A stretch of DNA of 64,000 nt from Basidiobolus meristosporus CBS 931.73 (lineage: Eukaryota; Fungi; Basidiobolomycota): NCBI GenBank assembly GCA_002104905.1, contig MCFE01000492.1, positions 2,830 to 66,829 of the forward strand. Reading direction: 5' to 3'. The notes below the pieces were generated by a model. It searched no databases and had not been told where the DNA came from. It saw only the letters and a list, made by a program, of their open reading frames with translations. A program made the translations under genes and the position numbers. The number at the start of each line of letters is the position of its first letter. Position 1 is the stretch's first letter. Below, in pieces: positions 27,827-63,151 of the stretch.

Positions 27827-27927
27827 TAGCAAAGTTGCCGTCAGCGGGAACCATCGGACAAGTGTAGTGTTTAGTATGGAGAATTGATATGCTTTATTAA
27901 TTAAACAAAGAGCTAGCTATGTATGAT

Positions 27928-29328
27928 TTATTTGTGCTCAACGGAGACGACCTTGCCAAGCATGACAGCGGTGTTACCATCGAGGAAAGCAATACGGGAA
28001 AGACCCTCGCAGTTCTTGAAGCTATCGACGATAAGGGGTTGGATGGGCTCGAAGACAACCTCGGCGGCCTCGGAAGCCTTGAGGGAGTGGGGGGACTCGA
28101 GCTTCTTACGGCCAGTCTCCTTACCGATCTTCCACTTGAGCTCGGTGATCTTGCAGGCAGCGCGACCGCAACGGACGAAACCGATGGGGGAGTATCCGGG
28201 CTTGACTTCTCCTGGGATATCGAGGGTTTGGATTTGGGCAGTGAAGTTCTTGACGGGGCGGAGGGTGTTGTCGCTCTTGTAGACCATGACATCACCAGCA
28301 CGGGGCATGTTACCCTTGTCAAGACCCTTGATGTTCATACCGACGTTGTCACCGGTTTGAGCGAACTCGACACGCTTGTGGTGCATCTCGACGGTGAACA
28401 CCTTACCGGTACAGGGGTTACCGGCGGTGTGGGTGGGAAGGAAGACAACTTCAGTGTTGGGGGTGACGGTACCTTGCTCGACACGTCCGGCAACGACATC
28501 TCCGACACCCTTGATCTTGTAGATACCGGAAACGGGGAGACGCATGGCGGCGTCAGCGTTACGGGAAGGAAGGACGACCATGTCGTTCAAGGCGGTGAGG
28601 AGGGTCTCAACGTGGATTTTGTCGCCGTTTTGGTTGATGACATCTTGTCCCTTCCACCAGGCCATCTTCTCGGACTTCTTCAACAAGTTGTCGCCTTGCC
28701 ATCCGGAAATGGGGAGGATAGGAACGGATTGCTCAACGAACTCCTTCTTCCATCCGACCTTGATAAGCATGTTGCGCATCTCATCACGGATTTCGTTGTA
28801 ACGGTCCTCCTTGTAACCGGCGGTATCGGAATCCATCTTGTTGACACCAATGATGAGTTGCTTGACACCGAGAAGGTTGAGGAGACGAGCGTGCTGGCGG
28901 GTTTGGCCTTGGATATCTCCGGCCTTGTGGTCACCCTTTTGGATGGCGGTGGTGAAGTTACCATCGGCGGGGACCATGAGAAGGGCGACATCAGCTTGGG
29001 CGGCTCCGGAAATCATGTTCTTGATGAAATCTCTGTGTCCGGGAGCATCAATGATGGTGTAGTGCCACTTCTCGGTGAAGAACTCCTTGGTGGTGCAGGA
29101 GATGGTCACACCACGCTCACGTTCGTCCTTTTGGCGATCCATGTAGAAAGCGAAGGCGAAGGAAGACTTACCGAGACGTTCGGCTTCTTGCTTCAACTTG
29201 TCCATTTCACGCTCGGGGATACCGCCGAGTTCGAAAAGAAGACGACCGGTAGTGGTAGACTTACCGGAATCGACGTGACCGCAAATAACGATGGAAAGAT
29301 GGTTCTTGTTGTCAGTAGCAGAGGACAT
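27928..29328 (-). CDS. EFL: Elongation factor-like GTPase (EFL), intronless CDS
   Basis: GHVDSGKSTTTGRLLFELGG, ERERGVTI, DAPGHRDFIKNMI and NKMD motifs, plus the EFL-type insertion DGNFTTAIQKGDHKAGDIQGQTRQHARL that distinguishes it from canonical EF-1alpha. Strong codon bias. Confidence 0.95.
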   Translation of the reverse strand: MSSATDNKNHLSIVICGHVDSGKSTTTGRLLFELGGIPEREMDKLKQEAERLGKSSFAFAFYMDRQKDERERGVTISCTTKEFFTEKWHYTIIDAPGHRDFIKNMISGAAQADVALLMVPADGNFTTAIQKGDHKAGDIQGQTRQHARLLNLLGVKQLIIGVNKMDSDTAGYKEDRYNEIRDEMRNMLIKVGWKKEFVEQSVPILPISGWQGDNLLKKSEKMAWWKGQDVINQNGDKIHVETLLTALNDMVVLPSRNADAAMRLPVSGIYKIKGVGDVVAGRVEQGTVTPNTEVVFLPTHTAGNPCTGKVFTVEMHHKRVEFAQTGDNVGMNIKGLDKGNMPRAGDVMVYKSDNTLRPVKNFTAQIQTLDIPGEVKPGYSPIGFVRCGRAACKITELKWKIGKETGRKKLESPHSLKASEAAEVVFEPIQPLIVDSFKNCEGLSRIAFLDGNTAVMLGKVVSVEHK

Positions 29329-30234
29329 ATTGAAGAGCGGTGTCTAGTCGATGATTTTCAAGAGACAGGTTAGTCAACTTGTCACTGCATCCCTATTTAA
29401 ACTATATTTACCCAAGGTACCTGCAAAAAAAAACTCGCCCTACCTTCACCTCTGGGGTAAATAAAACCCCTGGACATACTTGTCTAGTCACTCAATATAA
29501 ATGACTGACTATATTGGGCCGATAAGGTATGGCACTTTACACTTGGTAGAAACAGGTCCAGAAGAACAGGAAGCCCGAGTGGGCCATTGACTCGATATCC
29601 TCTTCGACCTTGCAATGGGAAGCCTCGGAGCTGGATCCGCAAACCTAACAATCGTAAATCACCACTTGAGGAGAGTTACGAACCTTCAACTCGACCTCGG
29701 CAATTATCAATGTCGGCATCATGGCTGCTTCAGCAACAAAAGAGTTGTTGTGGCATGTTCCCCTTATTCGATACTCGTGGTTTCACCGAAGTGAAGAATT
29801 TGTTTTTTTGTTCCATAATGTTTTACAAGCTCCACCCGTCTCAGGCCCAGTTAGCACAGCGTTGTTATCACGACCAGATATGGCAAATGACTTACCATGT
29901 ATGGGTAATGGAGGAATTTTCATATTTATTGCTATAGCTCATTTAGGATGGATACGGCGGCAATCAAACGAGGCCTGCCATACTTTTCTTTACTTCCGTT
30001 GTGTTGGGATGCTGTCGCAGATGAATTGGACTTCGGATCATGCTCTATCCTCGCCACTGCACACGCATACTCGTTGTAAAGCCTTGAGGGATGGTGTCCT
30101 GGTAAACGGGTGCCATTGCTACATGGGTGTGTGGCTGTCAGTCGTGGTCCTGCCAGAGCACCTTGCAAGGTGGAATAGAATAAATTAACGTTTTATTGCT
30201 ATATTACTACCAGGTAGTTGGATAATCCATATTC

Positions 30235-36659: not shown

Positions 36660-37599
36660 ATGATCCCCACCCGCTTGACACTCTTTAGTTTAGTGACTAG
36701 GCTTGCCGTCGTCTACAGTATTGAGGTGAAGGAGATCAAGAACGTGGTGATTTTCGGCGATTCCTACTCTGACCATGAGAATCTTTTCTCGATTGGCATG
36801 AACACCTTTTTCCCGCAAATCTATGTGGAGGGGCATTTTACCAACGGATTAATGTGGCCCGAATACCTGCAGAATCGAACCAGCTGGAATTTCGAGAATT
36901 ACTCGTTTGGCGGCGCTACTGGTATGGGCCCGTTCGATTTGCATCTGCATAGCCTGGTGGATTAACCGAATTTATCCAGTAAGCAACACACTGATTCCTA
37001 CTAACGCAGCTTTTCTGGGAGTGCCTGTCCCAAGCATCGAGCAGCAGATTGCGGCGCATAGGCAAAGGCTACTAAGCAACCCAAACGAACTAGATCACAA
37101 AGATACGCTATATGTGGTGGCTGCCGTTGGGAATGACTACAATTGGGACCGCACCCCTGATCCATCGGAAATCGTGGATCAGCTTGAGAATGCAACAATG
37201 CCGCTTCTCCAACCACCAATCAACGCGGACAAAATCATCTTTTGGAACGGGGGTTTTGAAAAGGTCCCAAGAAACCGAGTGTCCGAATGGAAATACCAAC
37301 TGGCGCTCTTCCAGCGCAAGACCCACAACAAGAGGGTGGACGAGGTCGTGAAGAAGTACCAAGCACTGAAGCCAAATCTGAGGATCAAGATCTTTGACCT
37401 AGATAGACTGCTGACGGATGCGGTGAAGGATCCCCTGTATCCCAACAGTTACGAGCCTTGTATAGTAGCGCACAAGGATGGACACAACTCCATCTGCCAC
37501 TATCCAGAAAAGAGCGTTTTCTGGGATGACATTCACCCAACCACCAGTATTCATCGGGGCTTTGCCCGCGAGATGTTGAGCGTGATCAAAAGTCTATAG
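36660..37599 (+). CDS. Secreted GDSL/SGNH lipase-esterase, one intron
   Basis: Signal peptide, then block I VIFGDSYSD, HFTNGLMWPEYL, block II NYSFGGAT, block III VGNDY and block V FWDDIHPT. The intron (about 36922-36978) splices in frame. Confidence 0.92.
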
Positions 37600-37920: not shown

Positions 37921-39153
37921 CTATCCATTGGTTGGGTTTACGATGTATGCCATGATCAGCGGAACGTCTGTACCTTTTTCCTTGATAATGAAAAAGAATG
38001 GCCGATTGCATTGGAACGTTTTGATTCGCGAAATGAATGGGACTCGCGCCAAAATCGTGTCTAGCGAGAGCCGGAAGAAGCCCCTGGCCTTAGGACCTAG
38101 AAGGAGTTCAATGAGCGATTCGGTTGTATTGTGATTTTAGTTGGTTGCCATACCGCGTTCAATTATCTCCATATGTGCCTGATGCAGATACGCGGGTAGG
38201 GTTTTGGGCTTTGAGGAAAGGTACGGGAAGACGGTGGCTGGATTGAATATTGTGGTCACTTTGGCTCTCTCCAAGTAGGGGCGCAGATTCAGCCGAGCAT
38301 CCAGCTTGAATTTCGGAATGTTGACGTTAATTCGATGCCTCCACCTATTTTTCTTAAGCGCGTTCGACCAATCCCAAGGGCTCATCATTTGGTGAAACTC
38401 ATGCAGCGCCATGGTACTTTTGGGAAGAATGAATGTCGCAGTAAATCTTTGGTCGTCGAAATCCATATCCAAAAGCTGGTACTTGTTATTTTCATAGTAT
38501 GGGTAGGTTTGATCAACTTGACTCATCATTATGGAGTTGAAAAATTTCCCGTTGGGGGCATTGAACCTCTCAACCTTGCGATTCCCTGGAAGAAATGGGT
38601 TGGCCCAACCTGCCGCGAAATGAAGAGTACTCGTCAATAGTAGATCGTCCTTCCTGAAGGTGGCATCCTTTTGTATGATACCAGTAAGCTTCCCACCTGT
38701 AGTTTTTCTCAACCAGGTCTCTACTCCGTGTGGGCTTGGCACTTGATTAAAAGTATCGCACAGTAACTCACGCCGCACGAGATTGCTAAAGCTTTTCTTA
38801 ATGTCTCTCCCCCATAAGGAGTTCGCCAAAATCAGGTCAGCCTTGGTTTGGTTTGCTGAAACAGGCACCTCGTCGAACTTGTCAATCAGATCATAAAAGT
38901 AGGTTTTGAAGAATAACGTGTACACATGAATGTTCTGCTTGTCCTTCGGTTTATACAATCCGAACAGTTGAAGCAACTCCTGCACTGCCTGACTCTTATC
39001 GTAAGAGGCGTACATAAACATAAATAATGCCGAGAAGATAGAAAAGGGGGAAAACATTAAATTAGTATCTACAGCATGGTCTTGTTGGAAGGACCCAAGC
39101 ATGTTCATTCCTAAAGAGGTCACCAGCTCCTGGACTGTGCTGTTAGCATTCAT
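37921..39153 (-). CDS. Serpin, full length (391 aa) after removal of a 57-nt intron at 38097-38153
   Basis: NLMFSPFSIFSAL, LILANSLW, LLLTSTLHFAAGWANPF, FILPK, IPKFKL and HQAHMEIIERG. Exon 2 supplies the RCL and C-terminal strands: PKARGFFRLSLDTILARVPFISRIKTFQCNRPFFFIIKE...LIMAYIVNPTNG*. Confidence 0.9.
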
Positions 39154-60577: not shown

Positions 60578-63151
60578 TTATTTGGCCTCTGGCTTGTCAT
60601 CCTCGAATTCAATAAGGATCTCCTCTGCACCAACGCTAGTACCGGGTTGGGTGTACACCTTCTTTACCTTGCCAACACGAGTGGCCCGCAAGACGTTCTG
60701 CATCTTCATGGCTTCGACCACAGCCAACTCAGCTCCTTCGGCGATAACATCTCCTGGCTTGACGGCAATGCTGACAACACTTCCGGGCATAGGAGAGATC
60801 AGGAACTTGGCCATGTCTTGCTTGGGCTTCTCCTTCATGTATTGAGAGAATTGTTGCTGGGCCTCATTGAGGACACTAACATCAAACTTGGTGCCGTAGT
60901 GTTGAAGCTTGAAGCCTAGTGGTTGGGGGTCGAGGTATTGAACGTCAACCTCCTTTTCGTTGATGCGAGCGTTTACCAAAGATGATTCAAGTTCCCAGTC
61001 GGCCTCGATGGCAACTGGCTCCTTATCATTGATGGAGACTGAGAACTTGGAGTCGGATTCAAGCGAGACAGGTCCCTCCCTGCTGACCTTAACCTTCATC
61101 ACCTTATCCTTGTCGGCGGGAGTGGGGTTCACGTACAAGTTCCACTCTTGGGGAACCTTTCTTTCAAGCTCGCCGAGACTGAGGTTTTTGCCAAAGGCCT
61201 TGTTGCGGATGTCACGCTTGGCGTAGACTAGAGCAGCAATTGAGGCGAGCTCATTGGATGTCTCCTCGTTGAGAGAGTGTCCCTTGAATCCTTCTGGGTA
61301 TTCTTCAGCAAGGAATTTGGTGGAGATCTTGCCACTGGCAAATCTAGGGTGGGAGACCACTTCGCGAAGCAGAGGAATGTTGTGGGTGACTCCCTTGATC
61401 ACATAGGAGTCGAGGGCCTTCTTCATGTTCTCAATGGCTTCATCTCTGGTATCACCGTGGGTGCAGAGTTTGCAGATCATGGGATCGTAGTAGATGCTGA
61501 TCTCACTTCCTTCAATGATACCGCTGTCACATCTCACTTCGCCCTTGCCCTTCAGGCTCTTGGGCTCAATGTACTTGCTGAGACGACCGATGGATGGGAG
61601 ATATTTCTCGGGATCCTCGGCATATACTCTGGATTCAATGGCCCAGCCGTGGATGGTAAGGTCCTTTTGTTGCAAAGCCAGCTTCTGCCCGGCGGCTACG
61701 CGGATCATTTGCTCGACAAGATCCACTCCGGAGATGTATTCAGTGATAGGATGCTCCACCTGAAGACGGGTGTTCATCTCCAAGAAATAGAAGTTTCTTT
61801 GAGAGTCGACCAAGAATTCAACAGTACCTAGGGGTAAACATGTTAGAAGAAGCGCTATCTCAGCGAAGCATCCACGACTTACCAGCAGAAGAGTAGCCGA
61901 CTTTTTTGGCCAGAGCAACTGCCTGTTCACCCATGGCCTTTCTGGTGGCTTCGTCCAAGTGAGTACTGGGGGCTTCTTCGATAACCTTCTGGTTACGACG
62001 TTGGATTGAGCATTCTCTTTCGGGAAGATAAACCACGTTGTCGTGCTTGTCAGCCAGAATCTGGATTTCGATGTGACGTGGGTTGTCAACATATTTTTCA
62101 ACGAGCAGTCTGTTGTCACCGAAGCTAGACATGGACTCGCTGGAGGCGATCTTAAAGCCAGAGACGACTTCCTCGTCGTTCCTACGAATGCCGTTAGGGT
62201 TGCTCGGATAGAACGATCAGATGCGTGAATCGCAACTTACCAAGCAATACGCATACCCTTGCCACCACCACCAGCAGAGGCCTTCAACATTACAGGGTAT
62301 CCAATCTCATGAGCTAAGGTATTGCACAGTTAGATTTGTCATTAGCACACAGCTTATAAAGCTTCTTACCAATTTCCAAAGCGTGATCGGCATCTCTAAC
62401 AACTCCATTGAAGCCAGGAATGGTGCTGACACCGGCTTCCTTGGCAATGATTTTACTCTGGATCTTATCACCCATAGCGCCCATGGCGTATTCACCGGGG
62501 CCAATGAAAGTGACGCCTTCCTTCTCTAGGGTCTGGACAAAAGCGGCGTTTTCTGACAAGAAGCCATATCCTAGTTGATGGAATGGTTAGGAACCCGGCT
62601 TAAGGTGGAAGTAGTCTGGTTGTAGTGGTCACCTGGATGAACGGCCTTGGCACCACTCTCTTTGATGGCGTTTAGAATAGCGGGCACGTTCAGATAACTT
62701 TGGCTGGTAGGAGCAGGTCCCTGGAGAAGATACTCAAAAAAGAGTCCCAAGTGCTAGTCTTTGTCTGCTGATACTTACCACGTTGTAGGCCTCGTCAGCA
62801 AGCTTGACGTGGAGACTGTTGGCGTCAGCGTCGGAGTAAATTGCAACGGTCTTGATACCCATTTTCTTACAAGTACGAATGACTCTGCAGGCGATTTCAC
62901 CACGATTGGCAATCAAAATCTTATCGAAGGTCTGGAAAAGAAGCGGACGTTAGTCTCGCAGCGCGGGAAGAGAGGGCTGCTCTGGTGAGGCTAACCTTTC
63001 CATAGTCAACGTTCTCTTGCACGTTAGCCTTGAAAGCAGTAGCTGTGGTATGGATAAATTGGTAGGAAGCAGGACGAAGAGTAACTGCAGATTGACGAGC
63101 CAACAACAAGTTGGCCGAAAACCGAGGGACGTGTCTAAGTTTAGCAAACAT
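60578..63151 (-). CDS. PCCA: Propionyl-CoA carboxylase alpha chain, mitochondrial, multi-exon
   Basis: Presequence [12 protein letters not shown], then [26 protein letters not shown] and [18 protein letters not shown]; PCCA-type [21 protein letters not shown] and [13 protein letters not shown]; biotin motif EAMKM. Confidence 0.92.

Follow-up and report, generated by a model that had tools for sequence, protein, structure and literature searches.

Among the known counterparts of the gene reported here are the non-inhibitory serpins of animals, which function without trapping proteases. Ovalbumin, maspin, PEDF, Hsp47 and angiotensinogen keep the full serpin fold together with an off-consensus hinge, often with a proline or a charged residue in it, and the hinges of human non-inhibitory serpins are poorly conserved, with frequent proline (PMC6379291, Table 1). 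The rule for an inhibitory hinge is Glu at P17, Glu, Lys or Arg at P16, Gly at P15, Thr or Ser at P14 and Ala, Gly or Ser from P12 to P9, and a proline in the proximal part of the loop blocks strand insertion (PMC9820262). PAI-1 becomes a substrate upon charged substitution at P14 (PMC6379291). In fungi, members of the I04 family are found mostly in Neocallimastigomycota and Entomophthoromycotina (PMC8778642), and in a phylogeny of the superfamily the fungal serpins are unplaced orphans (PMC8233489). A functional study exists for a Metarhizium serpin (PMC13236867), and celpin, from the cellulosome of Piromyces, shares with the protein of this study its origin in an early-diverging fungus. However, celpin carries a CBM_10 (dockerin-type) domain and belongs to the extracellular cellulosome (PMC8778642), whereas the present protein has a Serpin domain only and no signal peptide, and no celpin-like protein was found among its nearest relatives.

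The gene in question lies in a stretch of 64,000 nucleotides from Basidiobolus meristosporus CBS 931.73, which is called the window below. Like the animal proteins named above, its product combines a predicted full serpin fold with an off-consensus hinge, but there is no specific sequence relationship to them, the loss of the hinge is independent, and none of their known ligand-binding features was noticed in the window protein. It also resembles the clade B serpins (ov-serpins), which have no signal peptide and no N- or C-terminal extensions and are about 380–390 residues long; yet the tree does not group it with them, and inhibitors make up most of clade B. The preferred reading, with a probability of about 0.65, is that the window encodes a live, intracellular-type serpin paralog, most likely without the protease-trap mechanism. 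The serpins of Basidiobolus form a small family peculiar to it, one subclade of which has abandoned the inhibitory hinge and yet stays under selection. What task intracellular serpins may have in a fungus associated with the gut is a question that follows from this.

Gene structure and 5′ end

First of all, the naive minus-strand ORF at the locus (39153-38137) is 338 aa long, its terminal residues before the stop are ...HMEIIERGMATN, and what truncates it is an in-frame TAA within an intron. Serpin exon 1 (38154..39153, minus strand) starts with the ATG at 39153-39151 and holds 333 codons plus base 1 of the P15 Gly codon; its product spans the fold from helix A to strand s5A and takes in Glu (P17) and Arg (P16) of the hinge. 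The intron (38097..38153, minus strand) is a GT-AG intron of 57 nt in phase 1, GTATGG...CTTCTAG, and interrupts the P15 Gly codon. Serpin exon 2 (37921..38096, minus strand) contributes the last two bases of that codon, 57 further codons and the TAG stop at 37923-37921, and encodes the reactive-centre loop and strands s1C, s4B and s5B. The splice region reads GAA CGC G/GTATGGCAACCAACTAA...CTCCTTCTAG/GT CCT AAG GCC (the slashes mark the intron borders); the Gly codon is rebuilt on removal of the intron, and past it the serpin frame runs on for 57 codons as PKARGFFRLSLDTILARVPFISRIKTFQCNRPFFFIIKEKGTDVPLIMAYIVNPTNG up to the stop. That is to say, the spliced serpin has 333 + 1 + 57 = 391 codons, and the region coding for the hinge and the reactive-centre loop (38041..38160, minus strand) is split by the intron.

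The two exons were searched separately against Pfam, in which the cut-off for the Serpin family is 27 bits, and the natural full-length orthologue K7432_015475 of Basidiobolus ranarum was used for whole-protein analyses. Exon 1 matches Serpin (PF00079; 4.3e-39, 135.2 bits) at positions 3-319 of the 370 in the profile; exon 2 alone reaches 23.8 bits (E 3.2e-5) over positions 339-370, the last 32 of the profile. Because of these two ranges the exons are read as opposite ends of a single domain, and the stretch between both matches is exactly the reactive-centre loop. Among the frame-preserving GT..AG pairs only the 57-nt pair gives the length of the orthologue; the alternatives of 93, 108 and 111 nt would remove the hinge or the loop and do not match that length, and they were rejected. 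The original prediction that the stop at the hinge is undone by a 57-nt GT-AG intron at 38097-38153, giving a serpin of 391 aa, thus agrees with the orthologue, which shares the length, the intron codon and the phase, and the two-exon model of 391 codons is very probably correct as judged from the sequences. The public protein collection holds the B. meristosporus locus only as the unspliced ORF of 338 aa, and the gene model is corrected here, the true product being a serpin of 391 residues in place of the deposited 338.

A functional meaning had also been considered for a form that retains the intron. This idea was dropped, since no retained-intron product is conserved with B. ranarum: the tails differ (MATN against TFSFI before the stop), and so do the intron lengths (57 against 68 nt). 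By tblastn the serpin is confined to one locus in the window, with no second serpin and no alternative reactive-loop cassette exons. Serpin gene models of B. meristosporus seem error-prone near short introns; the annotated 324-aa model of the paralog K493DRAFT_410538, on another contig, has a non-serpin tail and is probably mis-spliced. Elsewhere in the window, a housekeeping ORF for propionyl-CoA carboxylase alpha (60581-62119, minus strand) agrees at 100% identity, over about 420 residues, with K493DRAFT_267811 of B. meristosporus CBS 931.73. In addition, two ORFs of 484 aa (27919-29373, plus strand) and 466 aa (27928-29328, minus strand) overlap almost completely on opposite strands, and the plus-strand one has no Pfam match.

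As for the 5′ end, a CTAAC...CAG just past the ATG had been taken as a possible sign of a missing upstream exon. The comparison speaks against such an exon. The first eight codons, MNANSTVQ, are the same in both species in spite of five synonymous differences from B. ranarum, CTAAC is absent in B. ranarum, and the start of the paralogs is homologous in position (one of them begins with MVFNATVGALV...). The Pfam match begins at residue 11, and the N-terminus aligns to helix A. Since MNANSTVQ is conserved through synonymous changes, the paralog starts are homologous and the Pfam match runs from residue 11, the annotated start is considered right. No signal peptide was found at this ATG, just as had been supposed: the hydropathy profile shows no signal-peptide core, and the paralogs share the helix A N-terminus. 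The serpin of the window is therefore presumably intracellular.

Orthologue, selection and predicted fold

K7432_015475, already deposited as 'Serpin domain-containing protein', was the sole close relative in a word-indexed search. It has 391 aa, is 60% identical to exon 1 without a gap, and its C-terminus is 49% identical to exon 2 at equal length. Its intron of 68 nt (GTACGT...CTTAG) lies in the identical Gly codon and phase; the introns of the two species cannot be aligned, and the exons have about 67% nucleotide identity. In the window, a GDSL-type lipase exon (36907..37599, plus strand; Pfam Lipase_GDSL) is convergent on the serpin, and the B. ranarum locus has a GDSL lipase neighbour in matching orientation, the two lipases being 64% identical (tblastn, 3e-91). 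Because this convergent neighbour is common to both loci, the two serpins are regarded as orthologues by synteny. The 3′ ends of serpin and lipase are about 320 bp apart in the window. In sum, K7432_015475 agrees with the window serpin in its start (MNANSTVQ), intron codon and phase, convergent GDSL lipase and non-canonical hinge, but differs from it in intron length and in nearly all of the hinge and loop (GSKTVVPPRFSF against GPKARGFFRLSL).

Synonymous sites are saturated between the two species (pS about 0.8). In exon 1, pN is 0.227 against a pS of 0.80, the scaffold has a pN/pS of about 0.28 and the C-terminal strands have an omega of about 0.29; pN of the loop codons is 0.586. There are zero indels over the 391 codons, and the protein distance accumulated after speciation, 0.5-0.6, resembles that of one canonical paralog pair. 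The scaffold is under purifying selection.

Structure prediction was carried out on the natural orthologue as a stand-in. The AlphaFold2 model of K7432_015475 has a pLDDT of 89.8 and a pTM of 0.89, only the loop 337-350 is disordered, and the TM scores against native miropin, antithrombin and conserpin are 0.80-0.86. The full-length orthologue is accordingly modelled as a complete, native-type serpin fold with an exposed reactive-centre loop. In the alignment, of the columns that are conserved at 75% or more, the window protein keeps 39 of 68 comparable ones (its exon-2 row is unaligned over 7 hinge columns of the 75), against 48 of 75 in K7432_015475 and 53-56 of 75 in the paralogs. The orthologue pair has lost several residues that are invariant in the family and kept by the paralogs, among them the shutter Asn (to Ser), the Asn of INxW (to Glu) and the Gly of LG; it retains FSPxS, the breach Trp (of GxW), the shutter His (P25), the Glu at P17 and the Lys of PKF.

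The serpin family of Basidiobolus and its origin

Exhaustive searching with phmmer against 1.84 billion representatives yielded 22,386 serpin matches, just 17 of them at E <= 1e-30. The named close matches are K7432_000261 and K7432_012050 of B. ranarum and K493DRAFT_345533, K493DRAFT_319740 and K493DRAFT_410538 of B. meristosporus, and past the Basidiobolus proteins the score drops from 344 to 217 bits. With at least four serpins in B. meristosporus and at least three in B. ranarum, the view that serpins are rare in fungi does not hold for this lineage. Just under the Basidiobolus paralogs in the phmmer ranking stand many arthropod proteins that carry two or three serpin domains each and are about 750-1150 aa long; since domain repeats inflate scores, they are no evidence of a special kinship.

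In the trees, the Basidiobolus serpins and one Dermamoeba transcript form a single clade (SH-aLRT 99, and 100/99 in the second tree) with a stem of 1.03 and three subclades, one of which consists of the window protein and K7432_015475 (100/100). The stem of this pair is 1.33-1.49 substitutions per site long, against 0.3-0.8 in the other subclades. The canonical paralogs K7432_000261, K7432_012050, K493DRAFT_345533 and K493DRAFT_319740 likewise have no signal peptide and share C[DN]RPF past the loop with the window serpin; they differ from it by an overall identity of only 29-37%, by the hinge E-[KT]-G-S-[KT]-A-S-A-A-T, by the shutter Asn, which they keep, and by loops that are 2-4 residues shorter. 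The hinge intron (phase 1, in the P15 Gly codon) is the only intron in all four family genes examined, which include the paralogs K7432_000261 and K493DRAFT_345533, with lengths of 57, 68, 66 and 55 nt, so that the layout of the family is a scaffold exon followed by a loop exon. Since paralogs with a canonical hinge carry it too, in the identical codon and phase, the intron dates back to the ancestor of the Basidiobolus family, and the earlier notion of a later gain peculiar to the window gene had to be given up.

The Dermamoeba sequence deserves separate mention. This protein from the transcriptome of Dermamoeba algensis (EukProt EP01097) is an amoebozoan serpin nested inside the Basidiobolus clade as sister to K493DRAFT_345533 and K493DRAFT_319740 (99/98), and it shares EEGSKASAAT and CDRPF; contamination, transfer or a greater age of the family may account for its placement.

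It is conceivable, though doubtful, that the family goes back to a horizontal transfer in the gut habitat, with a bacterium or some animal-associated source as the donor, and that intron gain and diversification followed. Many bacterial transfers into Basidiobolus have been reported (PMC7466969), there is no other fungal serpin among the closest relatives, and the next ones outside the clade, at 21-31% identity, are metagenomic, bacterial (Evansella, Trichocoleus, Planctomycetota, Pendulispora) and animal proteins, including arthropod serpins. However, the family has no resolved sister group, the branch that joins it to one metagenomic protein being just 0.013-0.015 long, and its own stem is long. 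GC and GC3 are ordinary, on which ground a recent transfer was rejected, and a scan of the genomes of 185,579 prokaryote species gave no close relative confirmed by tblastn. Moreover, surveys of transfer that mention Basidiobolus make no mention of serpins, and the shared intron and the amoebozoan member speak for a gene of old eukaryotic descent.

Hinge, reactive-centre loop and probable function

From P17 onward the window protein reads E-R-G-P-K-A-R-G-F-F-R-L-S-L-D-T-I-L-A-R-V, and the order E-R-G-P-K-A-R-G-F-F-R-L with Pro at P14, as first read, is found identically in the spliced translation. The protein agrees with the consensus of Glu at P17, Glu, Lys or Arg at P16 and Gly at P15 (E-R-G, the Gly through splicing), and departs from the consensus for P14 and P12-P9 at P14 Pro, P11 Arg and P9 Phe, to which Phe at P8 may be added as an oddity; Ala at P12 and Gly at P10 are nevertheless kept. 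The original prediction of bulky or charged residues from P11 to P8 thus stands for P11 Arg, P9 Phe and P8 Phe, but not for P10, where Gly is small, as is Ala at P12. In terms of orientation, P12 Ala and P10 Gly point inward and would not hinder insertion of the loop, and alpha-1-antitrypsin likewise has hydrophobic residues at P8 and P6. What clearly breaks the rule is Pro at P14, together with Lys (P13), Arg (P11) and Phe (P9), which face outward. The hinge of the orthologue, E-F-G-S-K-T-V-V-P-P, is off the rule at other places, with Thr at P12, Val at P11 and P10 and Pro-Pro at P9-P8. From P14 to P8 (with Gly P15 in front, GPKARGFF against GSKTVVPP), only one of seven positions is identical between the two, in spite of 60% identity overall. 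A proximal loop free of proline before P2 is found in neither, because of P14 in the window protein and of P9 and P8 in the orthologue. Of the 102 single-domain relatives whose hinges were tabulated, nearly all conform to E-[EK]-G-[TS]-x-A-[AS]-A-[AV]-T, Pro at P14 occurs in 0 of 102, and the Basidiobolus paralogs have EKGSKASAAT or ETGSTASAAT.

The suggestion that this serpin is probably of the non-inhibitory type gains from this comparison, as the hinge of the orthologue is degenerate too, at other positions, and the paralogs keep GS[KT]ASAAT. From such sequence rules we infer that inhibitory activity has probably been lost. The lineage of the orthologue pair would have gone through a burst of change after its split from the canonical, inhibitory-type paralogs, in the course of which the hinge motif G-[ST]-x-A-[AS]-A-A-T was lost, and with it, presumably, the rapid insertion of the loop into sheet A. 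On the simplest reading, selection for fast loop insertion would have ceased in the common ancestor of the pair. Since the pair has lost the hinge motif, the window serpin is most likely no suicide-substrate inhibitor of proteases; it may rather be a folded scaffold with an exposed hydrophobic and basic loop that works as a binding protein or a substrate-like decoy. Such a binding or decoy role, mediated by scaffold and loop, appears the most likely one, and no domain, neighbour or motif gives a hint of a positive function. The presence of canonical and degenerate paralogs in one genome, with orthologues in two species, makes a natural comparison for the loss of the protease trap.

It is unlikely, but worth weighing, that the window serpin is still inhibitory with an atypical hinge, maybe tuned to an endogenous or gut protease and perhaps with slower insertion. 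The window protein keeps P17 Glu, P16 Arg, P15 Gly, P12 Ala and P10 Gly, and with inward-facing residues at P12, P10, P8 and P6 like those of alpha-1-antitrypsin a slow or partial insertion, or inhibition of some protease, would be possible. The scaffold is under purifying selection with most of the breach and shutter residues that the stressed-to-relaxed change requires in place, the orthologue is modelled in a native-type metastable fold with the loop exposed, and inhibitory loops can be hypervariable too, as those of K7432_000261 and K7432_012050 are. Set against this are P14 Pro in the window protein, a residue that none of the 102 related serpins has at that position, and P12 Thr, P10 Val and Pro-Pro at P9-P8 in the orthologue, proximal prolines being expected by the published rule to block insertion (PMC9820262). 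In addition, the hinge is conserved at one position in seven between the orthologues, whereas the canonical paralogs keep theirs across longer distances.

Rather improbable is the bolder proposal that the pair represents the first conversion of an inhibitor into a non-inhibitory serpin with a new job in fungi, with the loop, in which an Arg-hydrophobic-Ser-hydrophobic motif is kept in both species, as a binding or regulated (e.g., phosphorylated) element and the family possibly the outcome of an ancient horizontal transfer into the gut-dwelling Basidiobolus lineage. Animals have evolved non-inhibitory serpins on many occasions, and the biology is for that reason incremental rather than surprising. 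A decaying or functionless duplicate, with an intron that is perhaps inefficiently removed, is very improbable: the stem branch is long, family-invariant residues are lost and the public collection has the locus only as the unspliced ORF, but both species have intact, indel-free frames of 391 codons with the same GT-AG place and the same start despite synonymous saturation, the scaffold pN/pS is low (about 0.28), and since speciation the two proteins have diverged by 0.5-0.6, about as far as one canonical pair of paralogs.

With the loss of the protease trap thus remaining the preferred reading, two minor observations on the loop may be added. The part of the loop that determines specificity is classically hypervariable in serpins, and in this family it lies on an exon of its own. 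K7432_000261 and K7432_012050 of B. ranarum are near-identical recent duplicates with a tree distance of about 0.12; their hinges (GSKASAAT) are identical, and their residues from P7 to P3′ are very different. The other observation concerns P7-P4 of the orthologue pair, where RLSL in the window protein and RFSF in K7432_015475 have the same pattern, Arg-hydrophobic-Ser-hydrophobic, in an otherwise unconserved loop. The loop codons for F-F-R-L-S-L-D lie at 38056-38076 of the window, and their counterpart at 2054-2074 of the orthologue locus. The pattern looks like a site for a basophilic kinase or like a small motif for recognition, though the agreement may be due to chance.
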